A DNA stretch of 44,851 nucleotides from Andalucia godoyi And28 (Eukaryota; Protista; Jakobida), in NCBI GenBank assembly GCA_009859145.1, contig VRVR01000034.1, forward strand, positions 69,425-114,275. The letters are read 5' to 3'. Below, in pieces: positions 23 to 41,954 of the stretch. Each line of letters starts with the position of its first letter. Within the stretch, counting starts at the first letter, position 1. The position numbers and the translations under genes were made by a program. The notes beneath the pieces were generated by a model, which was not told the DNA's origin, made no database searches, and saw nothing but the letters and a program-made list of their open reading frames with translations.

Positions 23-36
23 GGAAAAAAGGAGTG

Positions 37-1961: not shown

Positions 1962-3440
1962 ATGACGATTGAAGAGATTCTGGACTTGACTACGGTAGGA
2001 AAATCGTATTGCCGGATGCTCAACGATGGTGATACACAGCTGTCAGCCGTTTCCCCTTTTTGCTTTTCTTTTCTTGTTGTTCTATTTCTGCTTATAATTA
2101 CTACGACTAGGACTACGAGTATTTGAGTTGGTATTTTCGTGACTTGCGAAAAGGATGGAATGGTGAATCTCCGCTGTGTGTTTGGGAGCCATGAATCGAT
2201 TGTGAGGATTGCGAATCTTCCTGAAAAGGAATATCTGGCTCATCATTTGCGCGGACCGATACTCCGAGCATTTCCGTACTTGAAAAAGCGGTACTTTCAC
2301 ATCAAAGTGCATCCGAAGCCAATTGCTGCTGCATCGAGGAAGCCGCCTACTGCATATGATGCCGATGACAACATGGCTCATTTTGTTGCGGAAATGAAGC
2401 GAAACACGATTCACCACGTCGAAATTGTCCTCGATCGAAACGAAGACATGTACGTTTTGCGCACGACGGGTGTCATTATCAGATGCCTTATGGTAGCGGT
2501 TATGTCGCTTGCAGGCCTTGCGATCGCCGCCATTTCATATGCAATTCCGCTGTTTATTGCGTATTTGGTGCTTTTGGGCTACTTGGCTCTGTGGATGTAC
2601 GTGAAGCAATATGCAGAATCGCGGCGACAGGTCATTGTTCTTGCTGTGACGCTGGTTGCCATTTGGTTCGTTGTTCTCGCCCTGCTGATTGTGTTCGCGC
2701 GGGAAAACGTGTCTGATGCTTGGGACATTCTGATTGTGTGCTGGACTGTCGTCATCGAAGTGCTGTGTCTTGAGTTCGTCGTTCATCTCTCTTTTGTCAT
2801 CCGGTCATATTTTGTATTCCTTCGCGAAATGGACAAGCAGGTTAAAGAGGACATGGAAGCGCTTCAGATGCCGGTCACGAAATGGGATCCGCACTCTGTG
2901 GAGGACGATAAGGAAGACGAATCGGAGAAAGTGAACCGCATCAAGAAGAAGGATAGGATGCGCGCAACAGACGTCTCGCACTTGGCTCCGTCTCGACCCG
3001 AGGAACTGTCCGACGATGAGCAAGACTGGAGAGACGAAGGCGAAGACGGAAGTGACAGCGGAGCTGGGGCTGGGATGGGGCGGCGTCATGGTTCTTTCAA
3101 CGGCGGCGCAAGGGGAAAACCGTCGAAGAGTCGAAGACGAGAATCTGGCCAGTCCAACTATGAAGTGGATGATCCGCCTGAGTTTCTTGACGAAGCACTC
3201 GCAAGCAATGATGCCGATGATTTTGCAGACGAAGAGGGTTTTGGACATGAGGATGAATATGTGTCTGCACGCCCGTCGAACCGCACGGGACAGCAATCTC
3301 TTTATGACACTGACGATGTGGTCGAAGAGCCAGTTGGTGGTGGTGCTGACAATGAGTATGGGGGACAAGAGGAAGAGGAAGATGAAGATGAAGCAGACAT
3401 GTACGGCGACAATGACCGGGAGCTGCTGTTGTCGCACTGA
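1962..3440 (+). CDS. Putative 4-TM membrane protein (~439 aa) with small soluble N-terminal domain and long acidic C-terminal tail; exons 1962-1994 and 2154-3440
   Basis: A-rich leader then ATG at 1962; donor GTAGGA at 1995; branch-like GTGAC then AAG acceptor at 2153 gives an in-frame join (MTIEEILDLTT|DGMVNLRCVF). Four hydrophobic segments, then a D/E-rich tail. An alternative start is ATG 2160 with no intron. Confidence 0.7.
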
Positions 3441-7373: not shown

Positions 7374-8624
7374 TTATTTCTGCGTCACCGCCGACATGAA
7401 TGCATCAATGACTTGTTGAGCTGCTTCGCGTGGAGTCATTGTTTCTGCTTCGACGCTGTTGGACACGCTTTTCATGCGTGCCATTACGTCGTTATTCTGC
7501 AACAACATGGTCATCAGCTCCTCGCGAATCTGTTTCTTGAGCCACATTTGGCGAATCCGTAGCCGTTTTCGCTGCAATTCGCCGGTCTCTGTCATGATGT
7601 CCTTAAACTTGGCCATTGTCTCCCAGACAGCGGATACTGTCGCAGGCTGAAACGCCGAGCACTTTAGCACAGGTGGCTTCCACGACACCGACTGCGGCCT
7701 CAGTAGGCTCAGCGCGCTCTCAAAGTCTGCCTTGGTGTGATCGGCGCGACTGGCATTTTCGCCGTCGGCCTTATTAACAACGATCATGTCTGCAACCTCG
7801 ACGATTCCCTTTTTGATGCCCTGAAGCTCGTCTCCACCTCCAGGATACACGACAAGCGCTACCATGTCCGCCAGCTCGGCAACAACCGTTTCACTTTGTC
7901 CAACTCCGACCGTTTCCACAAAGACGACTTCGAACCCGGCAGCTTCGCACAGCAGCATTGCATCGTATGTGCTGGCTGTCACTCCTCCGAGAACGCCCCG
8001 CGTGGGAGAAGGCCGCACGTACGCCAGCGGATGTCTGGACAGCTCTGTCATTCGCGTCTTGTCCCCGAGAATCGATCCACCGGTAACCGTAGACGACGGA
8101 TCGATCGCCAAGACTGCAACCTTTACACCGCTGTTGCATAAATGAATGCCAAGCGATTCAATGAGCGTAGACTTTCCGGCACCGGGAGGGCCAGAAATTC
8201 CAATTCGGAACGCCGATGTATGGGATCGACGTCTTCTCTGCACCAGAATTCGCGACACTGCATCTTGGACGCATACATGATGATCGGTTTTTGTTGACTC
8301 CACTAGCGTACAATCACAGCAAAAAGGCACACATCAAAATATATGAAAGAAGAAGAAAACGGTCAGCGAACAATGAGCATAAGCACGCCATTTTGTGTGT
8401 TTCTTTTTTTCATTTCATGGATGATAGCATTGTAAAAATAAATGAGCACATAGAAGAGAATCAGAATGCAAGCACACACACATACACAGAGTAATTCCAC
8501 GAGACAGTGCAATTCGGTCAGCACTAATGATGCGGTCGGCAAGTTCACGGCCCGTAAGCGAGTAGTTTCTTACGAGAGCAGTGGTTCTTGGCACGCAGGA
8601 TGCACGCAATACTCCAACGAACAT
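7374..8624 (-). CDS. MMAA: Methylmalonic aciduria type A / MeaB GTPase, mitochondrial (~355 aa); exons 8624-8486 and 8302-7374
   Basis: GPPGAGKST P-loop, DPSS..GGSILGDKTRM, ETVGVGQSE, NKAD. Intron 8303-8485 (GTATGT...CTAG) restores RGITLLEST (family motif RAITLVES). Arg-rich, acid-poor N-terminal targeting-like peptide. Confidence 0.93.
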
Positions 8625-8935
8625 TGTCCTGCTGAACAGTTTCTGAAAAGGCATTTAAATCGCCAAAACCACCAAAACCACCAAAACCACCGGGTCCGAA
8701 ACGCCACAAAATGCAGCGCAAAGAAGACGATGACACGCAGCAGCATCACTTGAATCCTCACTTCCACCTGGAAAAGGGGGGAGCTTTCCCCAATGTCAAG
8801 TTTTCCCGCCTTCATTTGCACCTCGATTTTTTCTTCTTCTCTGCTCTAATGCGCTTTCCGGTTTTTCTGCTGCTTCTTTTCTCACTCAGCGCGATCTCGT
8901 GATTAATAGTAGGTTCGGAGACATCTGAATGTGCA

Positions 8936-11900
8936 ATGAGTGACCGGCAGGACAAGATTGCGGCAGGACGCGCAAAAGTATGATTTCTTCCCTTCTTTTT
9001 TTTCCTCCCCTTCTGTTTACGATGTTGCATGCATCTGTCCCGCCTGCATCCTATGAAAAAGATGAAGTCTCACAGATTTTCTTCCCGCCTTTCGTTCTGT
9101 CTGGTTCCCCTCACCTTTTTTTCCAACCTCTTTTTTTTTCCTGGTTGAATTGATGCGCGTAGTGGAATGAAGAAAAGGCACGCCGAAAGAATGAAGCAGA
9201 TCGAGCTTCGTTGGAATCTACAAGTTCCAAAACTTCGAACGATCGACTCTCTTCTGAATCAAGGGACGCACTGCTGCTACAACCACCACCGCCGTCGTCA
9301 TCCACCACTACCTCTTCCTCTTCCACAGGTATCACAGCCACTTCCCAGACCTCGGCACCATCTTATGCGTCCAAATCGGGGGAAATCGAAAAGATCACGC
9401 AAGCTTTGGGAATTGGACCGTCGCATCCGGTATGTCTTGATACAATTCTGACGACTTTTCTTTTTGATTTCTGTTTTTAATAATCCTTTATACGCCGTTT
9501 CTGCAGTAGTACTCACTTGCCCCCTTTCCCTTTTTTTCCCCCAATTCCGTAATTACGGTGCCAGCTGTTCGAAACGATCCAACACATTGTCCAGAACGTT
9601 GATGTGGATGTATCTTCTATGTTGGCAGGCAAGCAGCTGCCCACAGAAGGCTCTCCCAAGGAACTGTACGTGTCGCTGCTCAAGGATGCGTATATTGATA
9701 TTGCAAATCTGAAATCGCGCATTGTCCAACTGAAAGATGAGGAATTGGATCTTGCGCAGTCCGAGTGGATTGAAGAATCTCGACGACTGTCGATGTTGAT
9801 GCGAGAGACGCTTGACAAGGATGTGACGATCGAAGAATTACGCATGAAGCTTACCGCGTCGCTCGATGACGGTGAGCGGCTACGCAAGCGCATTGGCCAA
9901 ATGGAAAATCGGTTGAAAGAATTGACTCCTTTCGAAGCCAAGTCAAAATCCCTTTCGGACCTCGTGTCGAATCTCGAAAAGAAAAATGAGGCGCTGAGCA
10001 AAGACATCATGTCTCTGCATGTCACTGTCGAGAAGTTGACAGAAGAAAAGAAGGAAACGGAAAGATTCTTCAGGGGCGAATCGCAGAAGCAGCAGGATAT
10101 CGCCCTTGCGCTGAAGCAGGAGTGTACGGCTTTGCGGGAGGAAAAGGAAAAATTGCAAGGCGAACAGCACATTCTTTTGGAGGACTTGTCTCGTGCAGAG
10201 AAGGACAAAAGTCGGATCGCGCAGGACAAGGAACGGGCAAAAGCGGAACTTGAGGAGTTGATTGCGGCTTTGCGACAGGAAAAGGCGTTGTTGATTGAAC
10301 AGTTCACGGCAGACAAGCACCATTTGAAAAATGACGTGGACTCTGTGAATTCTGAAAACGAGGTTTTGAAGCACCAGGCAGATTCTGTCAAGAACCAACT
10401 GCGAGAAGCCTTGACTGCTCTCAACCAGAAAAACGCGGAGATCAAAGTTCTACAAGCGAACATGTCGAATTTCTCTCAAGAGCGCGTAGATCAGCTGGAT
10501 CTGTTGAAAAAGAAGCTGCAAGCTGCGATAGACGAAAGAGATGCGGTGTTACAGGATGCGGCAGCAGTGTCACAGCAGTGTCAAACTCTTACTGTGCAAG
10601 TTCATCACGCCGATGCGGAGAAAATAGCGCTTTTGGCATCCGTTGATGAATTGCAGAGTCTGCGCTCCAACGTCCAAAGCCTTCAGGATGCCGTGGCATC
10701 TGCAACAATGCAGCTGCAAGACGCCCAGAAAGAACGGGAATCTCTGTCATCGGAAGTTCATCGTCTGCGGGCAGAAGTCGAATCGGTCACGTTGGCATCT
10801 GTGGAGCTGCAATCGAAGCTGGACGCTGCCGTGCACGATCGCGAATCTGCACTCAGCGAACTGGCGCACATGAAAAAAGACCATCTTGCGTCTGTGAATG
10901 CAAAGGACTCGGAAATTTCTGATCTGCTCGCGCAAAATGCATCGCTGCTGTCATCCGGTCAAAACAGTCTTGTTTCGGTGAGCGAGATGCTGCAATCGGT
11001 AACTGCAGAGCGAGATGGTCTTTTGGAAACCAGCCACCAGCTTTCGGCAACGATCAGCGAGTTGAAGCAACAGCTGACCGAGCTGTCCTCTTCGCACGAG
11101 TCCAACTTGCAGCAGTGGAGGAGTCGCGAAGCAACAGCAGCGGAGCGTCTTGCTGTGGCCATACAGTCGTTGCAGAATGCTGAATTGCTCTCAGCGTCAT
11201 TGAAGAGTGAGCGAGATCAGGCACTGCATACACTCGCAGAGGAGCGCACTTCATTTGCTACTCAGATGGAACAGCAAAGTGTTGATGTGAAGAATGCCTT
11301 GTCGAACGCTTCTCAGCTCTCAGCAGAAAAACAGACACTGATCCAGCAGGTTGGTGTCCTGCAAGGAATCATTAACACCTTTGAGATATCCAAGGATTCT
11401 ACAGTGACGAACTTGTCTAGAGAACGAGACGAAGTCGTGGAGCGCATCAAAGAACTGCACAAGGACCTGGAACTGGTGACACAGGATCGAGATGCTCATC
11501 ACCACCGATTCTCAGAAGCACTTGTTGAATTGGAAGCAATGCGCGACGACCTGTCGCAAAAAACAAAGGTTTTTGAGAGCGAACTTGCAGAACTGGCAGA
11601 TCTGAGGTCGACACTGTCTGATGAACGTGCCTCGCATTTTCGAATCGTCGAAGAATTCGAATCCAAGATTGAGTCTCTGAAGCGAGAGAATGAGACGTTG
11701 ACCGAGACACTGGAGAGTGCTGAAGAGGAGCATCGGGAATTGCAGGAGGTTGTGGAAGTTGTGCGCGAGACTCAGGAGAATCTTGCTGTGCAGAATACCG
11801 AGAATTTCAATTTGAGACAGAGTCTGTCGCGCTTGCAGGACGAACTCTCTGCGCTTCGACCCCTTGTACATTCGAAAGATCAACAATTGTCAACCGCTCT

Positions 11901-14900
11901 TACTCGATGCGAATCGTTGGAATCGCAGCTCAAGATGTTGGAATCAGAAACGGAGAGTGGCCATGTTCGTTTGGTGCAAGATCTTGCTGCCGCAACAGAG
12001 GAAAAGTCGAAGTTGCAGCTGGAGGGATCCCAACTTTCCAAAACCGTCCAAGAAAGCTGTGCGCTCGTTTGCGAGAGAATTCTTCACCCGCTGCGTGAAA
12101 TTTTGGATAGAACTGCTGCATCAGAATCCAGGGAACCGCTTTCTATTCAGGAAGCCATCATTGCTGCTGCTGTTCTTTGTGATGAACTATCCGTTGTGTT
12201 TACGTTTAACAAATCGCGTGCTGCCCAGTTGTGCGACGAAATCAGTGCCGTGCAAAACAATCTTTCTCAAACCCAGGCGCTCCTTGCAGACTCGGAAAGA
12301 GAGGTACAGAATCTTCACCACCAGTTGCAGCAGGCGTCCAGTGAGATGCAGAAGAGTTCGACGGCTCTCATGCAAGCACAGGAGCGTGAGTCGCTGGCGG
12401 CTGCCGAGTTGAAACTGCTTCAAGAAGGTGCAGTGCTGAACCAAGAACAGATCGCTGCCGTATCCGCAAGACTGGAGTTTCAGCAGCAGCGGCGCGTGGA
12501 GTTGGAGGCAGAACGCAATGCAGCAGACGAGGATCGTCGAGCGCTTTCTGCAGAAAATGAGCGCTTGAAACAAGAGTCTTCCAAACAGCATTCGGAATTC
12601 ACTTCCGTAACAGATGCGAATCTTGATTTGCGAGACAAGTTGCTTGCAGCTGAAATGGAAGGATCGTCGTGGAAACAGCGATTCGAAGAGATCGAAGGGC
12701 AGCGAAAGCAGGAAGCGGCAGCACTTGTCGAAGCGCGATCTTTGCTGTCGTTCCACGCAGACCAGAAAGAGGTTTTGGCGGTCGCACAGGAATGCATGCT
12801 GAAATCCTTACAGGACCAGTACCAATGCGCTCTTGTCGAAAAGGAGTTGCTGACATCCAGCTCTGACGAGTTGAGAGCGACTTTGGACGTCGAGAGAGCC
12901 GAGCGGATCCAACTGGCGCAGAATTTCACAGTCGTTCGCCAAGAATACATGCAGACGATGGAGAGATTGCAGGCGTTGGAATTGCGAAACTCGCAGCTGG
13001 AAGAAGAAATGTCGAGATTGAAATACGATTTGCTGAAGGCGAATGCGGATTTATCGTTCAGTTCACGAACACAGGCGGCAGTGGACTCCTTGACCGAACA
13101 ACTGTCCGTTACCAGCCGTGAAGCGCAAAGTCTTTTGGAGGAATTGCAGTTGCACAAGAATCGTCTGCAGAGTGCTGCGAGTGCTCTCGAATCATCACAA
13201 TTGGAGAATCAACGACTGTTGAAGTCGTTATCGGAAGTACAGGAATCAAGTTCTCTTGCAAGTGTTTCTCTTCACGAGGCCGTTTCGCAACGGGACCTGG
13301 CAATACAGAAAGAACAGTTGTGTGTTTTGCGAATTCTCGACCTGGAAAGAGAGCTTGCATCGAATCACGCCTCGATGGAATCAACTTCTAGTCTCCTGCG
13401 CGACTCTCAATCTCGAATTGCAGTGCTCATTTCACAAGTCAAGGAGCAGGAGGCGACAGGATCGCATGTTCGCGCTGAGGACGATGTGACCTCGACTTCC
13501 GATTCAACCATTGATACTCTGATGCACAATTTGGAGTCCCAAGAACAACGCGTACAGGAGCTTGAGGCTGACCTGGAGCGCAAGCAGGAGATCATTCTGC
13601 GGTTAGAAGAGGACCTCTCAGACCTTGCATCCCGTGTAAAGAATGGTCAGTCGCATGCTGCAGAAGTGGAGCGTCGGTTGGCAGAAAAGGACTCAGTGCT
13701 GGTGGACGTCCAAGCAGAACGTGAAGCACTGTTGCTCCGATTGGCAGCCATGCAAGAAACCGTGGACGCGCTGCAGCATGATATTGGCCAACGAAAGAAA
13801 GAGGACGAGGCCGCTGCCATTTCCGAAACCGTGGTTGTGCTGAAGGAAATGAACAATCAACTGGATGCGAAACTGTCGAAACTTGCTGGTGAGAAACAGG
13901 ATGTTGAACGGCATCTGAGATCTGCAGTCGAAACCATCAGGGAATTTGAGTCACACAATCGTTCGTTGGCAGAACAGTTGGAAGATGCGAGACAACAGCT
14001 TGCGGATGCGATTGCACAGAACATCCATATTGCGATGGAGTTAGCGGAGTCTCATGGAGAAGTGACTGGCTTTACCAGGATTGACACCTCCATGTCGACC
14101 AGTCCCATGGCAAGCGGGTATGTTGATATTGCTGTTGGTACTCCGAAGCCATTACTTGTTTCGAATGTTTCGCTTCAATCTACCAACGAACACATGGTCC
14201 TGATGTTGGAACGGAAGCTATCCGCCGCCATGGATCAAATACGAGAACGCGATTCGCACATTTTGATTTTGAAGGATCAGATTTCCGATTTGCGGGACCA
14301 GCAAGCCCACTTAATAGAAGACTCAGTCCACATTAGCCGCGAACTTGATGCGCAGCGGTCAGTCTTTGAACGATCTACATCTCCAATGGTATCCGCAGCT
14401 TCGGGCTTTCCCAGTGCTGCGAATGGGCGAGGTGAGTTGGTGGATGAGGATGCGGCACGTGAAATCGAAGGCAAGGAGTGCATCAACTTCCAGGAGGAAG
14501 AGCATGCGCTTGAATCCGCACTGCGCTCTCTTCAGCAGGCATACGCTTCGCTTCGAGAGGAAAACAGCCGCCTCGAATTGGTCAAAGTTGAGCAGACCGC
14601 CTGGATTTCCCAACTTGAAATGCGATTGCGCGAGTGTGCCAAGGAAATTTCCGAAAAGGAATCTCACCTATCCAACTTGCGGAGCTCTTATGAAGATACC
14701 ATCTCTCGTGTTGCTTCTTTGGAGGACGAATACCGCGCGTTCCGAAAATCCGGTTCTCAGGAAGAAGCCGAGTTGAAGCGACGACTTGCACTCTCGGAGG
14801 AGGAGATGAAATCCTTGCGAGGGACGCATGCAGCAACCGTGCGTGACCTGAATACGGCGAGAACCCAAATCGAATGCTATCGAGAAGAAATCGGACACGT

Positions 14901-16071
14901 GATGAAGGAACTGTCAGTTGCACTGGCGGAGCGCGATTCGCTGCGGTCCGAATATGAACATCGGGATCGAGAGAGGGAACAAAGGACGTTGCATGAGAAG
15001 CGGCAACTTGAAGAATCCAATCAGGTCCTGCGTCAAGAATGCGACACAGCGCGCAAGGTTGCTGCCGAACTTGAGAGCGAAATAAGGCATCTGGTGCGCG
15101 TCGGCCACACGCAGAGATCTGAAGATGCAAAGGATCAACAACTGGCCTACATCAAGGACATGAATCGTGCTTTAGTAGAGCAGAAGAATTTGATGCGTAA
15201 TTTGCTGTCACCGCGTCTGTATCGATTGCTGTATCAGCCAGGCAAAGGCTTTATGGTGGGTCTGGAAATGTCGGACTTGTCTGCATTCCCAGGAGGCCGG
15301 GGTCGTGCGTCGAAAGCATCACGTTTCTGGAAGCACGCGTTCACGATGGTGTTGTGCATTGTACGCCTCAGACGGCTGGCTGTTCTTCGACGCAGCCACC
15401 CCATCCCGTTTGTCATGCCACAGCAGCAGCCCATGCCCCAGCCCCATGCCCACGTGCCATTGCATAACAGGGAAGCAGAAATCGCTTCGTATGTGTCGTC
15501 ATTGAAGAAGCTGCTCAAGCAAAAGGATGAGGAGCTGACGATGTTGAAGACGCACCTCTCCACTTCAAATACAGCGGGTCTTGGTGTGCCCGCGCCGTCG
15601 TTCAATCCATCGGGAAGTTTCTCCGCAAGCAGCGGTCCTCTACGTGGCGGATCCGGTGTTCTGCCACTCGAAGCGTTACGCACAGAATATCGCGTGCTGG
15701 CCGAAAAGGCTCGCCAGCTGCGATCGGATCTCGAGTCGTCTCAGATGCGCGAGAATGCCGAAAAACGTGCGAGAATTCGAATCGAGCAGGAGCTCGAAGC
15801 AGCCTGTAAGCGGATCCGCGAAGAAGAAAGCAAATCTGCAGACTGGCGTCGAGAGTATGAACAGGCGCTGAAAAGGTTGGAGGAGGAACGCAGAGTAGGT
15901 GTGTACATGGCCTCGTCTGCTGGTCGCTCGTTTGGAGCGTCTGGAGTTGCGATGACGGGGATGGCTGCCGCCGCGGACCTGCGGCCAAGTGCTGTCTCTC
16001 CGGAACGCGAAAACCGTCACTTGTATTCGGGGGCAAGTGGGGTGGTCCGAAGCAACTATCGAAGATATTAA
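8936..16071 (+). CDS. Pericentrin/AKAP9-like giant coiled-coil protein with PACT domain (~2271 aa); exons 8936-8977, 9163-9429, 9565-16071
   Basis: Donors GTATGA 8978 and GTATGT 9430 with acceptors TAG 9162 and CAG 9564 join in frame. N-terminus MSDRQDKIAAGRAK resembles AKAP9/PCNT RQKKLEAGKAK. PACT-like motifs RALVEQKNLM and RFWKHAFTMVLCIVRLRRL at ~15140-15393; heptad-rich throughout. Confidence 0.75.
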
Positions 16072-16215
16072 TTTCGCCGTCCCCTTCCCCTTTCCATTTT
16101 TGCTGCCATGTTCCCCCTTCCTTTCCCCTTTCCGTTTTCTCTCTGTTGATTCATAATTTTTTATTTTTTTTTAATTAAATTAAATTAATTGATAAAATAC
16201 GTGATGTGTTCAATG

Positions 16216-19200
16216 TTATGCTTCTTTTCGCAGCCTTTTGGAGTTCGTCTCGAGGGCGTCGTCTGAATGCAATCGCTTGCGGCCCGATACACTACCTGTC
16301 TTTTCCTCAATGAGATTCGCCCATCTTTCCAGTTGTGTCTCAGAATCAGCCGCAGCAAGCTTGTTGGTCTTGAAAATTCCGGACACAGTCGCGACCTGGA
16401 TTCCATGCTTGAGCCATTCCTTCACCTTGTCGCAAAACCGAGTTTCCTCGTCCAACACACAAACCGGGAGCGCACCAAATACACGCAGAAAAATGGAATG
16501 AATGAGAGACCACTCGCGTTGAGCAGTTGACCATTCAAACTTCCCCCGGACCATAAGAAGTCTGCAGGAGGCATCCAAATACGCTCTACAGGATTCCATT
16601 GCGATGTCCGGGTGCACGCCATACTCATCAAGAGCGAATTTCCACAGCGGCGCTTGCAACGCTGCCCATCGATCCACCACAATTTTCAAATCTGATGCAT
16701 TCGAAAATGCGGCAAGGGCTCCATACACAAAAACAACCGTGCGCTGCGCACGTCGCATTGTCAGATGGTATCTAGAATCCGACCGCATGATGCAATAACG
16801 AGTGCTACCAACAAATGCCATGCGGCGATCCGGAAAACGCACGTCCAGCGAGCCCTTGTCGAAGAGCGCGGTGATCAGCACATCAGCACTCTTCAACAAC
16901 AGTGGATCTGAAATCAACGTCTGAAATATGTTGAGGGACAGCCGTGCCAAGCGGATCATCAATGGGAAAACGACATTCGAACCACGATCCATCAAGTCTC
17001 GAATGCAGGAACTCACATCGCGAAGCTGAGGTAACAAAACAGAAAGGTGCGAATTCTCCTCCTCCGCATCTTGAGTGGCCATCTGTACATCATTCTCATG
17101 GACAGAGAGTGGGTAATTTTCTACTTCCCAGGGGAAACGAACCCGCTCCAGCTGCTGAAAGTAGATATTACGGCTCCGCTTCGCGGAATCGATGCAGCGG
17201 CGGACTCTCTGAACCCAGCAGCCCCACTTGTCGAAAATGGGGGCGAAGCTTGTGCTTGACCGATACTTCTGATTGCCCAAAACTTTTGCAATCCAAGACA
17301 CAAGAGACGAGCAAACATCTAAGGAGGTTGGTTGAGAATCCAGAGCATCGAAGTAGGATGTCAAACAGGCATTCACATCATCTAAAATAATCTCGGAGCC
17401 TCTCGAACCAGACAACAAGAACGCACGCTTCCGGTAAAGCTTGGCGGAAAAGAAATACTTGAGCCAGTGTGGGATATCCGAACAGCGGCCGAGAACAAAC
17501 AGCATCTTGTTGATAAGAAAAAGAACAAACTCCTTTCGAGATTTCTTCTGAGAATATTCAAAATCAGCAAGAAACCCAAATGACAGACACTGCGGGACAG
17601 CGATATTCTTCATTTCTCGACAAGGAACGATCTTACCGTCCGAAGACACGTCTCCATAGACTCCGGCATACAGTCCGGTAACGGACCGGACACTGCGAAG
17701 AAATTCCCACAGAACGTCCACGAGCGACGCGCTACACGACTTCAAGGACAGCCAGTAACAAGCACGCTGGACAATCACGGTGCGAGTAAGATAGCAGGAA
17801 TTCAGAGACAGTTCGTGACCAGCATAAAGGAAAGAGTCCAGTCCAAGTTCATGAATGACCTCAATACGTGGATAGCATTGATATGCAAGCTGAGTATAGC
17901 CGTCGCGCAAAATCCCAACCAGCTCGTTCTCGTCATCAACATCGACCGACGATTCTCCGGAAAAACTCCTCCAAAAGATCATCAGCAGAGCCTTTTCTGC
18001 GTACTCGACAGCATTGACTCTCAGGAAAGCCTTGTCCGCTCCCTTTGAACCGCCAACAGAATGGTAAGTTGCAGTGGCTAATGCGTAGAAAAACTCAGGA
18101 TACGCCTGAACTGGGTCAGGTACTTGCAGTGAACAGAATTCGGACATGAAAAGTTCCCGTCTTCCAGAAAGAACCAGCGAAGTTTCTGAACTCGAGCCGA
18201 CATCCACGGGCGGGATTGCGAGATACAAGAGATGTCGGGAATCCGCGAGAAAGCGGTCAAATCCAAATCGTGAGTAAATGCTGGAAAGAGACTCCTGAAT
18301 GACATCGAGGTCATCGCACTCATCGATGAGAACCTGCAGGTTTACCAGGAAAATGTTCCGAATTCCCGGCGGAAAAGGAACAGAGAGGCCTCGTTCTTCT
18401 TTGGCTTCCGGAGCAGGAGTGGATCTTGGATACTTCTTCAGCCTGTGCATCGGTGGTTCATGGGAACGAGATCCTGCGGAACCAAAATCCGTCATGTCAA
18501 AGAGCGCCAAACACTCTAAAATCCAGTCTTCTCCGTAGGTGACATGCCCATATTCATTCTTTTCCATCCGATAGTAAGGCTCGAGCTCTTCAAGCAAATC
18601 CGACCACCAGCCTAAGCCCGGACTGGAAAATGAAACCCATTGAAATCGTTCTCTAAGCCAGCGCAAAAACGGCAGCTTCCTGCCTTGTTCCAAATTCAGA
18701 CACAGATATCGAGCGCAGCACGCTGCCAGCGACGGCGCTGGCGAAGAGACAAAAAAAACACACGCTTTGACGATTTCTCTCTCTCGAGCAACCACAGACG
18801 GAGAGCAACGGTCGGAGCTGACAGACAGACTTTTCTCAGTCAACAAGAGGTCCATAATAAAATAAACGCAGGAACCCCAGGGAGCGGTAGGGGGCATGGA
18901 TACCAGAGAAACAAGATGCAACAATGTTCGCAGCAGAGTATACGCCACCTGAAACAGCAGCTTCGCTCCTTCAAGAGGCAGCAACAGGTCGTCCACAAGA
19001 ACAAAGGCCTTGTTTTCACGTGCCACCATTCTCGACAAGACGACTTCACAAACACGGTCCACAAATGCAACAATATTACCACGGGAGAACCAGCTGAACT
19101 CCTCAATTTGCACTGGATTGACAAACGGCCACCGGCTGGAAGCGGTCTTGAGACGCTCCATCACCGACGGCTTCGGACTCTCGGGTGTTGCGGGTAAGAA

Positions 19201-20970
19201 TTTGGACCGAAGACGCTCGAACGCGGTTTCCTGCAATACGCAGCGCTCAGAAACAAGAGTCATGAAGTCATAGCAATCACATAAAGTGAGAGAATTCGTG
19301 TTTGAAATGAAGACAGAAAACTGAAGAGACGACAAGTGAGATTGCAAGAAGTCGCTATCAAGAACGCAGCCGAATACATGCCCAACACCCGCTTGCGTTC
19401 CAAAGCCACACATCTTCTGGGCTGCTTCATGCGACGGGTGGAGCACCCACTTGCACCAGCACGCAAGGAGCTCGCGAGGAACATTCTGCAATCCGTCTGT
19501 TGCCAGCGGATCCTCTTCAGGACGACTCGACGGCAAATCACGGAACAGGACATGCAAGTATTCTAGGAAATCCTTCTTGGAGATATCGCCAAGAAAACAT
19601 GACGAAGCACAAAACGCCGCAAACAGGATACGTATGAACAGCGGAGAACTCCAAGTGAATCGAGAGCTGTGAACGTGAAAGATGATCTTCCGAATTGATT
19701 GGCCAATAGTGAAGGGAATGCGGGAGGCCAGATGGCTTCGGAGGTAGGAGAATGCAACTTTGAGCACAAATTCTGCAAATCCCATGCTGCTCTGTCTTTG
19801 ATCCAGAACCGTCTCGATGAAGAGCTGACAATCCAGCCGAGACTGGTAGTCCGCGTGGGCTTCCATGTTTTTGAAAGGTACCAAGCCACTCTTCTGAACA
19901 GGCAGCGCATCGTCTGTTCTCGGGAGCCCAAACAGTTCCATCAAATACCTTTCCACCGGCCTGTCAGTAATCTTTGCGGCTGCGGATGATGCAGCACCGG
20001 AAGTTGGCTTTTCCACAGCCAGCGAGTCCTCGTCTCTTTCGCTTAGATTCATTTTCCATGTCGGAATTGACGGCTCAGGCGTCACGAGACTCCAATGTAC
20101 GGAGTCCAGCCCATGGGCTGGCAACGACGCCACAGCCTTCGCAAGTTCATTGAAAAGGCACTCAAAGGTGCCTTGCACAAGAGAAATTGCAATCCACTCT
20201 CGCGGCTGCTCTTCTTGAACTTTTTGTTCAGTCAACCCACTGAACATTCGAAGATCTTGAAGAGAACGACACACCAGAGCATCTTCCTCGCCGAAAAACG
20301 CACGATTTGTCAATTTGACAGAGGATGGGTGCAGTATTTGCTGAAGCACCTGCTGCTCATTGTCCAACAGTTTGAGGCGGGAATCCACAAGGACTCTGTA
20401 TGCTTGCGCATCCAAACCGAGGTTGAAGAAGATGTGAAACAGTTTCCGAAAACACCGGTCTCGAAGACCTTTCATAGCATACGACTGTGGAATAAGTTCG
20501 ACGTAGTTCTGCAGCACAATGATGTACGGTCTTGAAACGGGGCACACCGAAAGAAAATGCTGGCATATCCTCATTGACTCTGGGTACGCGTCAACCGCCT
20601 TGGCCGCGGACACGATGACTTCCACGAGGGACGATGGGAACGTAGACACACTTGCCTGGGGAATGTGAAAAACATCCTTTGAAGAATCCACGATGATCGA
20701 GGATGCATGCTCGCTGCGTCGTAGTTTTCGGAATAGCAATTTTGATAAATTATAGCAAGCATATCCATATAATTGAAGCATAGGTCTGCTCCACACGCTC
20801 TGTATCTGTTCCCAAAGTCGGCTGGCAAGAACGCTTCGAAGGAGGGATTCGGCACCCGTGTCGTCGCCTCGTAGCATGCACTTTAGCGCAGCATTGTACT
20901 TGTCCAAAAGCTCAGCCAACGATGGATCTCGAGAGAGATTCGCCGGTGGAACCAGCGAAAACCGAAACAT
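16216..20970 (-). CDS. CABIN1: Cabin1/Hir3-like TPR/alpha-solenoid protein (~1584 aa), HIRA complex subunit candidate
   Basis: ATG at 20970. N-terminal KYNAAL...AESLLRSVL...MLQLYGYACYNLSKL parallels Cabin1 LYHKAL...LILKYSTYKNLAQL; HWLKYFFSAKLYRK resembles the Cabin1/Hir3 WxxHYMLGK motif. Strongly diverged. Confidence 0.6.
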   Translation of the reverse strand: MFRFSLVPPANLSRDPSLAELLDKYNAALKCMLRGDDTGAESLLRSVLASRLWEQIQSVWSRPMLQLYGYACYNLSKLLFRKLRRSEHASSIIVDSSKDVFHIPQASVSTFPSSLVEVIVSAAKAVDAYPESMRICQHFLSVCPVSRPYIIVLQNYVELIPQSYAMKGLRDRCFRKLFHIFFNLGLDAQAYRVLVDSRLKLLDNEQQVLQQILHPSSVKLTNRAFFGEEDALVCRSLQDLRMFSGLTEQKVQEEQPREWIAISLVQGTFECLFNELAKAVASLPAHGLDSVHWSLVTPEPSIPTWKMNLSERDEDSLAVEKPTSGAASSAAAKITDRPVERYLMELFGLPRTDDALPVQKSGLVPFKNMEAHADYQSRLDCQLFIETVLDQRQSSMGFAEFVLKVAFSYLRSHLASRIPFTIGQSIRKIIFHVHSSRFTWSSPLFIRILFAAFCASSCFLGDISKKDFLEYLHVLFRDLPSSRPEEDPLATDGLQNVPRELLACWCKWVLHPSHEAAQKMCGFGTQAGVGHVFGCVLDSDFLQSHLSSLQFSVFISNTNSLTLCDCYDFMTLVSERCVLQETAFERLRSKFLPATPESPKPSVMERLKTASSRWPFVNPVQIEEFSWFSRGNIVAFVDRVCEVVLSRMVARENKAFVLVDDLLLPLEGAKLLFQVAYTLLRTLLHLVSLVSMPPTAPWGSCVYFIMDLLLTEKSLSVSSDRCSPSVVAREREIVKACVFFVSSPAPSLAACCARYLCLNLEQGRKLPFLRWLRERFQWVSFSSPGLGWWSDLLEELEPYYRMEKNEYGHVTYGEDWILECLALFDMTDFGSAGSRSHEPPMHRLKKYPRSTPAPEAKEERGLSVPFPPGIRNIFLVNLQVLIDECDDLDVIQESLSSIYSRFGFDRFLADSRHLLYLAIPPVDVGSSSETSLVLSGRRELFMSEFCSLQVPDPVQAYPEFFYALATATYHSVGGSKGADKAFLRVNAVEYAEKALLMIFWRSFSGESSVDVDDENELVGILRDGYTQLAYQCYPRIEVIHELGLDSFLYAGHELSLNSCYLTRTVIVQRACYWLSLKSCSASLVDVLWEFLRSVRSVTGLYAGVYGDVSSDGKIVPCREMKNIAVPQCLSFGFLADFEYSQKKSRKEFVLFLINKMLFVLGRCSDIPHWLKYFFSAKLYRKRAFLLSGSRGSEIILDDVNACLTSYFDALDSQPTSLDVCSSLVSWIAKVLGNQKYRSSTSFAPIFDKWGCWVQRVRRCIDSAKRSRNIYFQQLERVRFPWEVENYPLSVHENDVQMATQDAEEENSHLSVLLPQLRDVSSCIRDLMDRGSNVVFPLMIRLARLSLNIFQTLISDPLLLKSADVLITALFDKGSLDVRFPDRRMAFVGSTRYCIMRSDSRYHLTMRRAQRTVVFVYGALAAFSNASDLKIVVDRWAALQAPLWKFALDEYGVHPDIAMESCRAYLDASCRLLMVRGKFEWSTAQREWSLIHSIFLRVFGALPVCVLDEETRFCDKVKEWLKHGIQVATVSGIFKTNKLAAADSETQLERWANLIEEKTGSVSGRKRLHSDDALETNSKRLRKEA

Positions 20971-21285
20971 CTTGAAAAGTAGGTTAAATAACAAATTTGA
21001 ATTATAAATGAAAAAAGACGCACATCCCGACTCTGGAACTCTTATCTCTACAGCTTCGGATCGCTGAGAAAGAAGAAGAAGGGGAGAAATAGCCAAACAC
21101 GAAGCAAATGGGTTTTCGGCGGGATCGCGACTGATTTTTTCTTTTGCATTTGTTTTCTTTTTATTTTAATATTTTTTGCGAGGGGGGCGTTCTCATTTTT
21201 CGTTTCCTATCTTTTCATTCCCGATTCGAACTTTTTGGTGGACTGTTGACTCGTGATATTTTACGATTTATTTAAAGAAAGAGAG

Positions 21286-21393
<108 letters not shown>

Positions 21394-21434
21394 ATTTCCG
21401 AACTTCTGGACGTCTGACGTGTTTTTGTGACATT

Positions 21435-22580
21435 ATGACAGATTCTGTGAAGACGTTTGTATGCGAGGCAAAAGGGTGGGACGGGTGTCCATTGCATGTT
21501 ACTGTGCACCTGCCTCCGCAAGCCAAGGGACTCGTTCTGTGCGGTCATGCGATGGCTGTTGATTCTCGTACAATGTACCGACCACCCACGACCGTCACGA
21601 CCAGCACCCCAAAACCACGTAGCACCACTCGCGAAACGATTGGGTCAGTGCTTCTGAAGCAAGGATTTGGAATTGCTTTGCATGAAAGCCGAAACCGACG
21701 GCAGAGCGGGTTGCCGGCAAACAAGGGTGGATGTGCGACGTACGAAGACTATGTGCACGATGTCGGATCGCTAGTGGACTGTATTTGCGAACATCCGCAA
21801 CTCAAGCACTTGCCCCTTGCAACCCTTGGCCATTCTCAGTTTGCACATGTTGTTCTCGCGTACCTCTCGATGAGTCTGGACCCTCGCGTTAAGGCCCACG
21901 TGATGTTTGGGGGGAATGCGTGGGTGAAGCGGTATGAAACGTCGACCTTGAAGTGGATGCTCAAGGTTCTGATTATGGTCGCGGTGCAGCTCTGTGCATT
22001 GATTGTTGGCTATGTGCCATTTGTGCGGCTTGGAATGGGCACGTGCGACGAAAGCGCACTCTTCTGGTCGTCGTTTCTGCGGTTCAACTGGAGAGATGAG
22101 TGGTGTACAGATCGGCGTGCTCCGGAGCCTGTTCATGGCAAAAACGCCAGGAGGTCGAATCGGAAAAACGAATGTCCTACTTGGACTCAGTATCGCAGCA
22201 GATTTGGCACAGATTCGGCTGCTATCCGCAACAGCGTGTCTTCGCTCGATTTCGACTATGCCGCGCATCTTTCCGAGATCAAAACGCCTGTTCTTGCTGT
22301 CTTTTCTTCAGCGGATACATTGGAGTGCAAAACAGAACAAGGAATCTTGTTCTCTGCTGCGGTCCCCAACAGGAGCATCGTCGTGTGTGATACAGGGATG
22401 TCGAAGCTGGACAAGCGAGATGTCGCGGCCATTGAGAGAGCGAGAATGGACGGACACTCGGTGCAGATTTTCCAAACCAGCCGGCTCAATCACATGGGGC
22501 TCTTGACAAGTGCGGGTGGTCAGCCCGTCTGGGAGTATGCGTCGACGTGGATCCATGCCACGGTCCTCAGTCGACTTTAA
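21435..22580 (+). CDS. Alpha/beta-fold hydrolase (381 aa), bacterial-like, with atypical nucleophile elbow GHSQF
   Basis: GLVLCGHAM (oxyanion loop), TLGHS (nucleophile), PVLAVFSSAD (acid), LNHMGLL (His); intronless. Confidence 0.85.
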   Translation: MTDSVKTFVCEAKGWDGCPLHVTVHLPPQAKGLVLCGHAMAVDSRTMYRPPTTVTTSTPKPRSTTRETIGSVLLKQGFGIALHESRNRRQSGLPANKGGCATYEDYVHDVGSLVDCICEHPQLKHLPLATLGHSQFAHVVLAYLSMSLDPRVKAHVMFGGNAWVKRYETSTLKWMLKVLIMVAVQLCALIVGYVPFVRLGMGTCDESALFWSSFLRFNWRDEWCTDRRAPEPVHGKNARRSNRKNECPTWTQYRSRFGTDSAAIRNSVSSLDFDYAAHLSEIKTPVLAVFSSADTLECKTEQGILFSAAVPNRSIVVCDTGMSKLDKRDVAAIERARMDGHSVQIFQTSRLNHMGLLTSAGGQPVWEYASTWIHATVLSRL

Positions 22581-22724
22581 TTATCTGATTCTCATTTGTT
22601 TATTGATTATTGATATTATTATTTTCTTTTTGAAAGGGTTTGTTGATTGCTCGATGTCCGCTGCCCAGTTTCCCTTTGGAAGCTTCAACAGTTGTCGTAT
22701 GGAGAACATCCATATACTGAGTAT

Positions 22725-23133
22725 GCATGACCGTCGCTAATCATGCCGTAATCAAATGTTTCAACCGGGGGCCCTGCCGGCGTTCTCAAGAGAAATGCTG
22801 TTGCGCGCACCATTCCAATCGCGACCAATCCGGCATGCACGCTGTGGACATGCAGGCATCCTCCAATCGCGGCGCTTCTTCCCTTCTGCCGGCTCCCTCC
22901 GCACCGTACGAGAGGGACGGTCGAATTTCGGAAGTAGAATGCAGTCATGCTCACTCACACAGCCATTTTTGCAAGCTTAAAATAAAAAAAGGATGAACAA
23001 ACAAAGGAGGTTGCTGCTTTAAATAGTGTTCCCAGAAATTAGCATCTGAACAATTTGGGGCTTTCCCAACCTAAACAGCCTCGAACCTTGGATTATTAAG
23101 CGAGCAAATCCAGAATGTCAATTTCGTTTGCTT
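22725..23133. repeat. Dispersed non-coding element, long copy (409 bp)
   Basis: 22725-22778 matches 41514-41567 (3 substitutions in 54 nt); 22961-23133 matches 41568-41741 (1 substitution plus 1 indel in an A-run). Confidence 0.95.
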
Positions 23134-23356
23134 GTAGTTGTTTTTTTAATATTATTTTTTTACGTACGTTTATGCGTGTTGTTGCTTGTCGCCACCTTTG
23201 TGAGAAACGGAGCAAACCCTCAAAAAGAAGGTGCCGATTCCACGATTTTATTCCCCTTTTTCATTCGGGATATTGGATTATTCGTTTATCTATTTTATTA
23301 CCATTCTTATTATTTATCATTATATTTTTGGTTCTATTCAATCGGTAATCAAAGAT

Positions 23357-23417
23357 TTACTATTATTATTATTATTTTAATTATTATTATTATTGTTGTT
23401 GTTGTTGTTGTTGTTTT
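23357..23417. repeat. (ATT)n-(GTT)n compound microsatellite
   Basis: Seen directly upstream of the LRR gene. Confidence 0.9.
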
Positions 23418-23467
23418 GAACTGTACCGGACAAGGCTGCAGAATTGCTCCACACAAACATTCGAGAC

Positions 23468-26400
23468 ATGCGGCATTTTGCAACCGCGACTCTTCTCGTT
23501 GTCCTTGTTGTTCTCGGACTCTCACAAGACTGCTTTTCCTATTCGGGTATGCCAGTTACGGAGGGACAGATGACGTCTCCTGTCCACCGATCCCGAAAAC
23601 CAAAGGGTCCCATTCAAAGCAGATCTCTAGCTGTGGATCCCGAGCGGCTGTCTCAGCTGCATTCAAAGAGAGCCGAGCATGATCGCCATCTAAGAAAGCT
23701 TGGCTACGGGATGGATCGCATGCGATGGGACCCTGTTCTCCACGGGTCTCGAGGCATCATCGAGAGTGGCCATGTGAATGAGAATATCCATACGTCCTGG
23801 TCAATGTTCCGCAAGCATAATAGGCTCAAAATTTCGAGAGGGAATGACCAAAGTTCTGCTGGCAGGAGACGGTCATCTAGGGCGCTTGGAATGGAGGTGG
23901 AGTATTCTCCGGATTGCGCGGTTCTTTGCAAGCTTATGGACATGCAGCCTCCTGGGTATCAGATCCCGTTGGTGATGCCAACGTTTGCTTTGCAGTGGGA
24001 AACGTGTGCGAATGCTTCCAGCTGGAGTTGCTGCAATCCAAACACCGCTGGTGTCAGCTGCCAGGTGATTAACGGTGTCAATCGAGTAACGAAGATCATT
24101 GGCAGCTCGTGGAACCTTGTTGGAAACGTTCCGGTGGAATTTAGTCAGCTGGAATATCTTGTCTCGCTCGAATTGAACGATAACAACTTTATCGGCTCTT
24201 TTCCCACGTGGTTGCTGAATCTGTCGCATTTGACGGACTTGCAGATTGCGGGCAACTTTTTATCCGGACCGCTGCCGTCCAATTGGACTGGGGTACCTGC
24301 ACTGCAGATTCTGTATCTCGGGTATAATCTTTTCGAGGGGGCGATCCCAGACGCCATTTACTCTCTGCGAGATCTCGGAGGACTGTATCTGACCGAGACA
24401 TTCATTGGAGGCCCAATTTCACCGATGATCGGTCAAGCCACAAGTCTGACGCTGTTTGTTTCGGAAGCGACAACTTTGATTGGCGAGTTACCTGATGTGT
24501 TTGCAAATCTTACCCGGCTTCGTCGCTTTTCTGTATCCGCCAACTCTCTCAACGGAACACTCCCTCCAAGCATTTACGAATGCCAGTCGTTACAATTTTT
24601 GTTGCTGGACGATAACTTCTTCTTTGGGGAAATTCCGAATAGCATATCGCAATTGACCTTTCTTCGAGTCTTGTACATCAACGAGAACAATTTCACAGGA
24701 ACAGTGCCGACGGCACTGGCCAGTCTATCGGGCTTGGAGTCTCTCGGGTTGCAAGTCAATTCGTTCAGCGGGACATTACCAGGAGCTCTGGCGAACTGCA
24801 CATTGCTGGCAGAACTGCAAGTCTATTTCAACGATTTTTCGTACATTGATCCAAGCCTCTTCAATCCGACAAGCATGCTGACGTACGTCGACGTCTCCTT
24901 CAATTCGCTGACAGAGATCCCCGATTCTGTTGGGCTACTTTCTAAGCTTTTGGTCCTCAAGGTTGATGCCAACAACTTGACGGCCTTTCCCATCAATGCC
25001 ATCACAAGCGTTTCCACTCTGAATCTGTTGTCCATGTCTTTCAATCTCATTTATGATAGTTACTATGACAACAATGATTACAATTGCCAAACTCTTGATG
25101 CTGCCAGTCAGTCGTACGTTGCTGTGCTGGATATTTCGAACAATCCAAACATCTTTTGCAACTTGTATTCTATGTACTTGTGCAATGCAGCAAACTACGG
25201 AGGCGGTGCTCTTGTCGTGCTGAATGTTGCGCATTCGGGAATCTATGTTGAAGAGTCGTACACCATGGTTGCGTACTCGGAAGAACATTCGTGTGGTCTG
25301 CTGTCTCTGATTACACTCGATCTCACAGGTTGCAATGTGGCCGATGTGGACGCTCTTGATGTCGTTGGGCGATCTTTCCCTGCATTGGAGGAGCTGATGG
25401 TTCCAAATTCTCAGCTACAATCAGACATTGCACAAATGCAACTGCTGCCGTTCATGCTGTTTTTCAATGCATCGCACAACCCGAATTTCCAATTCAACGT
25501 TCTGGACTATGGGGCTTCTCTGGTTGTCCAGCCGTCGGCTTCAACGATGTACAATGCATCTGCCAATGGCCACTACTTTTGCTTTGAAGTCGAGTCGATT
25601 ATTCAGCCTTCTGCTCTGTTTGTCGTAGACATTGACATCTTGTCACAGTACCAACTGTGTTTTTGCGACAAGGGATTCTATGGCAAGCCTCCGCACTGCG
25701 CGCTTTGCCCGACAAACGCTGTCTGCCCTGGTCCGGATCTTGTTGCGGCGCGCACGTCTGAGTTAGACAATGTCGATGCGCGATACTTGGCCTACTTGCA
25801 AGGAGGAACCATGTTTGCAGAGACGGGCTACTGGGCTTCTCCGCCATACGATTTGGATGATCTTCAACGAGGGATGTATCCGACTACGTTTATTCAGTGC
25901 AATGGATTTGGTGCTGCGCTGTCGAGGTGTCGACCCAATAGCTCAAACTTCACGCAAGCATGCGAAGACGGGTATACAGACCGGTTGTGCTCGAAATGCA
26001 GCTCTTCGTATTTCTCGGTTTCTGCTGAATGGTCTGCTGTTACGACGTGCTTGTCTTGCAGCAATCAGGTCTCCCTTCCGTGGTTCCTTTTCATTCTGAT
26101 ATTGTGCTTGATCATCGTTATGATCGTCGCCTTCGTATCCTCCGCTTCTACTTCCGGCTTCCTGAAGATTCTCATCTTCTTCTTGCAGTTTGTTGCGCAG
26201 TTGCGGCTACCAATACCGTCAGGTGCTGGCGGATTTTTCTCGACCATTTTTGCCATGAGTTCCCTCAGCTTGTTCGGACCTGAATGTTATGTTGACTGGT
26301 GGAACTACGAATCTCAGTTTATCCTTGCCATCCTGGTGCCGGTTGGCTGTGCTATTGCCATTGGCTTTGTGTGGATTTCGGGAAAGCTGCTCAGCTTGGT

Positions 26401-41741: not shown

Positions 41742-41954
41742 CCGCTCATGCATAGCGAAACCTTGGAACATTTTGTTTTTTAACACATATACTCATTTAT
41801 TTTTATATTTTTATAATTCTAATTATTATTATTAATATTATTTTTTTTAAATTATAAAGATGTGAATGACTAAATTAATTATTTATTTTTTGGTGTTTTG
41901 ATTTATTATCCATTGATTTTCACGAGCTGTTGGATTCGAGCACGTAAACTCAAG

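Follow-up and report, generated by a model that had tools for sequence, protein, structure and literature searches.

A candidate pericentrin/AKAP9-family scaffold protein in the jakobid Andalucia godoyi

The window analysed here is a stretch of 44,851 nucleotides (nt) from Andalucia godoyi And28 (contig VRVR01000034.1, positions 69,425 to 114,275), compact, eukaryotic and with about 50% G+C, and all coordinates below refer to it. It contains ANDGO_06928 (EukProt EP00762_Andalucia_godoyi_P005811), a gene whose public label is merely "hypothetical protein" and whose product we propose, with a probability of about 0.65, to be a true, very divergent member of the pericentrin/AKAP9/Pcp1/Spc110 family. 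Since this jakobid protein combines the N-terminal motif of AKAP9 and pericentrin, a first intron at the same spot and a weak, colinear PACT-like region, the pericentrin/AKAP9 scaffolds are probably older than the animal-fungal lineage. The first-pass annotation of the window, made from its letters alone, had read a full pericentrin/AKAP9 architecture into the gene and had made a wider ancestry of the family dependent on a host outside animals and fungi; as a jakobid (Discoba), A. godoyi is indeed far from both.

Centrosome-evolution papers treat the pericentrin family for animals and fungi, and a survey that included Naegleria found pericentrin and AKAP9 homologues in one eukaryotic supergroup only, with centriole core proteins tracing to the last eukaryotic common ancestor and the scaffolds of the pericentriolar material (PCM) treated as one-supergroup inventions (bioRxiv 10.1101/2024.01.08.573270).

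The N-terminal exon and the first intron

Three exons join in frame into a coding sequence of 6816 nt and a protein of 2271 amino acids (aa) that begins with MSDRQDKIAAGRAKWNEEKARRK (Table 1), and the spliced translation is, residue for residue, that of the public model. The two introns inferred from the letters (8978-9162 and 9430-9564) do have GT..AG ends at these positions, and their removal yields the identical product. The A. godoyi genome (~20 Mb) was annotated with guidance from RNA-Seq and PASA (PMC7050145), and it is through this annotation, indirectly, that the splicing of ANDGO_06928 has transcript support. Introns occur in just 12% of 864 curated A. godoyi genes; all are GT..AG, they average 151 nt (PMC7050145), and intron 2 is of typical size for them. 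Codon-usage log-odds, trained on neighbouring long open reading frames (ORFs), were above zero in exons 1 and 2 in the proposed frame only, and below zero in the other two frames. A short upstream ORF that overlaps the main start codon might lower or regulate initiation.

The N-termini of human AKAP9 and PCNT served as the query profile with which real database sequences were retrieved (MEDEERRRKLEAGKAKLAEYRQRKA of AKAP9 type; MEEQRRQKVEAGRAKLAHYRQRKA and MDQEERQRKLDAGRVKLAHFRQRKA of PCNT type), and the later profile hidden Markov model (HMM) was built from four of these database N-termini only (P0123-P0126). Exon 1 of A. godoyi scored 12.5 bits with this HMM, against a background maximum of 7.2 bits in a six-frame search (233,621 residues), and in that ranking it directly followed the true animal AKAP9/PCNT exons as the best non-animal sequence, ahead of the background. 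The spliced N-terminus scored 11.4 bits, with eRrrKleAGraKLAeYR.QRKA aligned to DRQDKIAAGRAKWNEEKaRRKN, a value that composition-preserving shuffles attained in 5 of 20000 cases. In the A. godoyi protein as in the animal ones the motif begins at residue 3-5, and the pattern that marks the vertebrate PCNT/AKAP9 subfamily, (E/D)RQxK(L/V)xAG(K/R)xK-L at the protein start, is present in ANDGO_06928. The likeness to the AKAP9/pericentrin N-terminus claimed in the first-pass annotation is a real match to database sequences. A literature search with the N-terminal peptide strings returned no match.

The first intron follows directly after the K of AG(K/R)xK, in phase 0, as it does in AKAP9 and in the PCNT-type gene (exon and intron are separated by a slash in the following). 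In A. godoyi the boundary reads GGA CGC GCA AAA/GTATGA ... TAG/TGG; vertebrate AKAP9 genomic DNA (L002) reads GCA AAG/GTAAGA, with intron 1 at the same codon boundary and phase, and the PCNT-type gene of the fish Aldrovandia affinis (L005) reads GGA AGA GTA AAG/GTGTGT, followed by a 3.4-kb intron that ends in CAG/CTT GCT CAC. Moreover, 15 retrieved AKAP9 fragments share MEDEERQKKLEAGKAK+V and diverge afterwards, which corresponds to read-through into the intron. Such fragments (P0127-P0141; L002 1501-1560, ...EAGKAK+V...) are prokaryote-style gene-call artefacts in a large protein collection and, as such, handy markers of exon ends. Since the intron site, which the first-pass annotation had not remarked on, is common to both vertebrate paralogues, it strengthens the match of the N-terminal motif, and since most A. 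godoyi genes are intronless, the shared intron is hard to dismiss. As read from the sequences, the N-terminal exon and its intron together constitute strong evidence for family membership.

The PACT-like region near the C-terminus

Queried with the last 342 residues, a phmmer search of 1.84 billion representative proteins returned two proteins only, ANDGO_06928 itself and P0002, a 5'-truncated protein of 733 aa from JGI metagenome 3300042934 that is 29-36% identical to it. Gene order is kept between the window (8936-27262) and the P0002 contig (L001 69-12270), with the gene itself followed by a large gene without annotation on the other strand, Hydrolase_4 and LRR. Given these same downstream neighbours, P0002 is an orthologue from a related organism, and the conserved gene order indicates that an uncultured relative of Andalucia was present in the JGI 3300042934 sample. 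A homologue search started from the last 327 aa had no match at E <= 1, a metagenome scan for further orthologues gave 116 pattern matches of which 0 were confirmed (the P0002 contig evidently lies outside that collection), and for the DnaJ and WD40 products encoded nearby, exact look-ups gave no record.

In the working model of the PACT domain of PLP and PCNT, a dimerisation helix (CBD1) is combined with a calmodulin site (CBD2) (PMC6559791, PMC13174551). The corresponding parts of ANDGO_06928 would be RALVEQKNLM (aa 1971-1980) and RFWKHAFTMVLCIVRLRRL (aa 2023-2041), encoded at about 15166-15378. When the jakobid pair, ANDGO_06928 and P0002, was compared by hhalign with 18 diverse metazoan PACT sequences, the score was 24.8-25.1 (P about 0.001), a value reached in 0 of 300 column shuffles, and the reversed control scored 11.4. 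Against a domain-only PACT template the pair scored 20.3 (P = 0.005) and was colinear over three blocks, namely QK, G-x-F/Y-P and RF...R(L/M)(R/K), with the jakobid L..QK.hh on FRKALIYQKKYLLLL of PACT, R-ALVEQK-NLM on FRKALIYQKKYLL, x-F-P on G-x-Y-P and RFWKHAFTMVLCIVR on RFRSAVRVVIAISR. Over the comparisons with PACT, P ranged from 0.0014 to 0.005 and the hhalign probability from 7 to 24%. The CBD2-like helix was also found by BLASTP (identities 9/17, E = 0.001).

The same pair scored 23.4 against Spc110 (900-925; P = 0.0019; 0 of 200 shuffles), with 38% identity over 26 columns in which the calmodulin-binding helix of Spc110 aligns with jakobid FWKHAFTMVLCIVRLRRLAVLRRS; metazoan PACT scored 17.8 against Spc110 (P = 0.02), and unrelated calmodulin-binding helices scored 8-12.5 against the jakobid pair. 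The jakobid module is thus closer to PACT and to Spc110 than those two are to each other, and behaves as an intermediate sequence. In the CBD2-like helix, W2025-F2029-V2032-L2038 have the spacing 1-5-8-14, with seven basic residues and a net basic character, which would fit classical calmodulin targets and makes this helix a putative calmodulin-binding site. We regard the evidence for PACT as suggestive and of "Spc110-grade", that is, statistically weak. Of the PACT domain that had been claimed, what stands is this weak, colinear likeness to PACT and Spc110; a significant match to the Pfam model does not, and P0002 gave none.

Several results weigh against membership in the family. PF10495 was the top Pfam family for the isolated 90-aa segment, with 14.7 bits and E = 0.042 against a gathering cut-off of 25 bits, and the match spans only profile positions 44-74 of 77, which is the second calmodulin-binding helix (the CBD2 half). 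Longer queries (the whole exon-3 product and the C-terminal 371 aa) gave no PF10495 match, and neither did the orthologous segment of P0002, so that the Pfam check proposed together with the first-pass claim came out below the cut-off, and for the isolated segment only. As controls, the PACT domain of human AKAP9 reached 98.8 bits, and S. cerevisiae Spc110, an accepted member whose C-terminus (805-944) was verified against PDB 8qv2/4ds7 before scanning, was also sub-threshold, with 18.9 bits on profile positions 49-74 only; this parallel, like the top rank of PF10495, speaks for membership. Around 15 bits is noise level, as seen in the PDB, where the jakobid profile matches AMPK kinase at 15.3 and the PACT profile matches TONSOKU at 20. 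When hhalign was run on one sequence at a time, nothing distinguished the PACT-like windows from other windows of ANDGO_06928. Between the jakobid orthologues the PACT-like helices are 29-30% identical, against 38-42% further downstream, whereas PACT is a conserved island in animals; and the exhaustive phmmer search returned no bridging relatives. No match to CM1 (PF07989) was found at E <= 10 in aa 1-200 or in shorter segments, a scan without a positive control: the Spc110 segment scanned alongside (about aa 150-204) lies beyond the CM1 of Spc110 itself (aa 117-146). An HMM of the metazoan motif that follows PACT matched nothing in the jakobid proteins. Finally, a parallel gain of the first intron at the proto-splice site AAR/GT is possible, since K-rich codons before GT are favoured intron sites.

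No PDB chain of PACT or Spc110 was matched by the PACT-like region, by the CBD2 helix or by the jakobid profile, the metazoan PACT profile fails to retrieve Spc110 from the PDB, and we found no solved PACT structure there for comparison with the jakobid region. A metazoan-only PACT HMM had no match in the full jakobid proteins, and the Pfam scan of the jakobid segment did not report Spc110_C.

Architecture and comparison with known scaffolds

Between its two ends ANDGO_06928 has a rod of ~1800 residues that, from its sequence, is probably a coiled coil (Table 1). With a crude heptad score, 13% of residues lie beyond the 99th percentile set by shuffles, where shuffled sequence itself has 0.8%, and no Pfam domain was found in the rod region. 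By these heuristics (composition, proline map and heptads), the protein has the extended coiled-coil rod that family members carry ahead of their targeting domain.

The C-terminal 327 aa were modelled by AF2 from a two-sequence alignment, with a mean pLDDT of 59.7, too low, and a model too helical, for a fold search. Helices were predicted at aa 1956-1983, 2017-2046, 2069-2106 and 2138-2224, with a PACT-like helix-linker-helix topology. About 225 residues lie beyond the PACT-like module. The first-pass annotation called this extension unusual, a judgement that does not hold, since animal PACT genes (penguin PCNT, Nematostella) likewise encode conserved sequence well past the PACT exon, and the jakobid extension is not unusual in kind. 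RRSHPIPF is the best conserved short block within the PACT-like region. RRSHxxPF (15388-15411) and the terminal SG(V/I)VRS(N/S)YR(R/A)Y (16033-16068) are the two short blocks most strongly conserved between the jakobid orthologues; to our knowledge, neither has a counterpart in PACT, and both may be lineage-specific interaction sites, as judged from their conservation in the orthologue.

In the animal genes, we verified in genomic DNA a motif after PACT, (D/E)xSL(T/S)xYIxRLExxQxRL, in penguin PCNT (L007 16248-16343) and in Nematostella (L006 11509-11583). It sits in the exon downstream of the PACT exon and is conserved from cnidarians to vertebrates. We know of no described function for SL(T/S)xYIxRLExxQxRL.

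Table 1. Features of ANDGO_06928 in the window (a slash within a nucleotide string marks an exon/intron border; percentages and identities refer to the orthologue P0002).
Feature	Position	Strand	Description
Upstream ORF	8929-8943	+	4 codons, ATG TGC AAT GAG TGA; out of frame, overlaps the main start codon at 8936
Exon 1	8936-8977	+	encodes MSDRQDKIAAGRAK; AKAP9/PCNT-type motif (D/E)R(Q)xK(I/L/V)xAG(R/K)xK
Intron 1	8978-9162	+	185 nt, GT..AG, phase 0; AAA/GTATGA...GCGTAG/TGG; exactly after K of AGRAK
Exon 2	9163-9429	+	89 aa; basic WNEEKARRK, then a Ser/Thr/Pro-rich low-complexity stretch; as in the public model
Intron 2	9430-9564	+	135 nt, GT..AG, phase 0; CCG/GTATGT...GCCAG/CTG
Exon 3	9565-16071	+	2168 codons and stop; single open frame
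Long rod	9673-15120	+	aa about 140-1955; rich in L/E/S/A/R/Q; proline-free spans of >600 residues; heptad enrichment
CBD1-like helix	15121-15204	+	aa 1956-1983; R-ALVEQK-NLMRNLL; AF2 helix; L..QK.L kept in P0002
Linker	15205-15303	+	aa 1984-2016; x-F-P aligned to G-x-(Y/F)-P of PACT (hhalign); VGEFP here in P0002
CBD2-like basic amphipathic helix	15304-15393	+	aa 2017-2046, SRFWKHAFTMVLCIVRLRRLAVLRR; W2025-F2029-V2032-L2038; Pfam, hhalign and BLASTP matches
RRSHPIPF block	15388-15411	+	right after the CBD2-like helix; 6/9 residues identical
Post-PACT helices	15460-15927	+	aa 2069-2106 and aa 2138-2224 (87 residues, pLDDT >90); 38-42% identity
Disordered tail	15928-16068	+	pLDDT <40; ends SG(V/I)VRS(N/S)YR(R/A)Y; 8/12 last residues identical

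Compared with vertebrate PCNT and AKAP9, ANDGO_06928 is likewise a giant coiled coil with (E/D)RQxK(L/V/I)xAG(R/K)xK at most 5 residues from the Met, followed by a basic stretch, with intron 1 in phase 0 at the identical codon boundary, with a helix-linker-helix near the C-terminus that carries the QK, x-F/Y-P and RF...R(L/M)(R/K) blocks (47 residues from Q to RF, and about 44-46 in animals) and with a tail of >100 residues beyond the C-terminal module. It differs in that the animal string YLRAESFRKALIYQKKYLLLLLGGFQ is reduced to R-ALVEQK-NLM--LL, in that the W of (R/K)(R/K)W is absent and the likeness to PACT lies far under the Pfam threshold, in that the metazoan terminal motif is missing, and in its length of 2271 aa, against >3300 in the vertebrate proteins.

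With Spc110, which is grouped with fission-yeast Pcp1, the jakobid protein shares the helix alignment described above, the sub-threshold match to the same part of PF10495 and a rod N-terminal to the helix; the CBD1-like QK motif is clearer in ANDGO_06928 than in Spc110. Unlike ANDGO_06928, Spc110 is without the AG(K/R)xK N-terminal motif, and its SPM and CM1 bind gamma-TuSC, whereas CM1 was not detected in the jakobid protein. No PDB CM1 chain was matched by the jakobid N-terminal region. NLK-RI--L resembles CM1 by eye, with the key Phe missing; KELYV..., considered for its likeness to Spc110, was dropped, since its counterpart is at Spc110 158-179, downstream of CM1. SPM and CM1 in the N-terminal region mark the SPM-CM1-PACT class of gamma-tubulin complex receptors, and the paper on that class states that AKAP9 and D-PLP are without them (Lin et al. 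2014, PMC4034690). The predicted arrangement also matches the published working model of the PACT domain of Drosophila PLP and of PCNT (PMC6559791, PMC13174551), in which CBD1 ends a long helix and CBD2 is a separate basic helix.

Around the gene, an ORF of 1626 aa at 16216-21096 (-) converges on ANDGO_06928 with a spacer of 144 nt. It is one of the long ORFs without a Pfam match at E <= 0.001, up to 1626 aa in length, the others being at 27639-30530 (-), 41898-43202 (+), 34-1404 (+) and 2139-3440 (+). Just upstream, at 7374-8327 (-), lies a MeaB/MMAA-type GTPase (methylmalonyl-CoA mutase chaperone; 318 bits); since this ORF starts at GTG, a further 5' exon or another start is likely. An ATG-initiated ORF of 316 aa at 9513-10463 (-) runs antisense to ANDGO_06928; in all likelihood it is not a gene and arises from the codon bias of the sense strand.

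Alternative explanations and implications

As the main rival reading, ANDGO_06928 could be a coiled-coil protein peculiar to jakobids, perhaps of a flagellar-root or other cytoskeletal fibre, in which the likenesses described above arose by chance or convergence, with the intron as a parallel gain at AAR/GT. We consider this unlikely, while granting it appreciable weight: every similarity to PACT is sub-threshold and spurious matches of equal score exist, conservation between the orthologues does not favour the PACT-like region, bridging homologues were not found in the searches made, and a single supergroup is the only reported source of pericentrin and AKAP9 homologues (bioRxiv 10.1101/2024.01.08.573270). 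Against such a coincidence speak three independent family features that occur together, correctly ordered and each at the end of the protein where the family has it: a motif that starts at residue 3 and scores well above the background, a first intron with the same site and phase although the genome is poor in introns, and a colinear PACT/Spc110 likeness that beats shuffles, the reversed sequence and unrelated calmodulin-binding helices.

A narrower homology, in which only the N-terminal exon and its motif are shared, as part of a wider set of long Golgi/centrosome tethers with K-L-x-A-(G/A)-K-x-K-L at their start, and no true PACT domain is present, seems to us improbable. GM130 appears to start with a similar motif, and the N-terminal evidence is much stronger than that for PACT; yet the controls show the likeness of the CBD2-like helix to both PACT and Spc110 to be specific, and this helix sits at the end of the rod, as PACT does. 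We give very little credence to the 5' exons being an artefact of the gene model, with translation truly starting further in, at M122 (nt about 9619), and the motif outside the protein. The short upstream ORF overlapping the proposed start and the low complexity of exon 2 would fit an artefact, but the independent public annotation, for which RNA-Seq and PASA were used, arrives at an identical product of 2271 aa, both small exons have frame-specific coding potential, the splice sites are canonical and the introns of typical size, and a chance mini-ORF is not expected to carry an AKAP9/PCNT motif that ends precisely at GT.

If ANDGO_06928 is a divergent member of the pericentrin family, its mode of action may be sketched by analogy with PLP, PCNT and Spc110 (PMC6559791, PMC13174551, PMC4034690). 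The rod would form a parallel coiled-coil dimer, terminated by the CBD1-like helix, after which a short linker would lead to the basic CBD2-like helix. The latter would be the docking site of calmodulin or of an EF-hand protein of centrin type, which would stabilise the module, and the C-terminal PACT-like module would anchor the protein at basal bodies or at a spindle microtubule-organising centre (MTOC). The N-terminus, with its AKAP9/PCNT-type basic motif, would then point outward and recruit partners, and any binding of gamma-tubulin complexes would be equally hypothetical. We lean slightly towards the broader proposition that ANDGO_06928 is a jakobid basal-body/MTOC scaffold and that the family already existed when Discoba and Amorphea last shared an ancestor, which was the last eukaryotic common ancestor or close to it, and by then had the N-terminal exon, the first intron in its present place and a calmodulin-binding anchor of PACT type.

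As a true member of the family, ANDGO_06928 would be the first candidate outside the supergroup to which PACT proteins have been assigned, and would contradict the view that they are confined to it. Its sequence would be intermediate between the very different PACT module of animals and Spc110 module of yeast, and the shared first intron would provide a simple, checkable marker with which members of the family may be found in other protists. The PCM/MTOC scaffold and its calmodulin-dependent anchoring would have originated in early eukaryotes, near the root.

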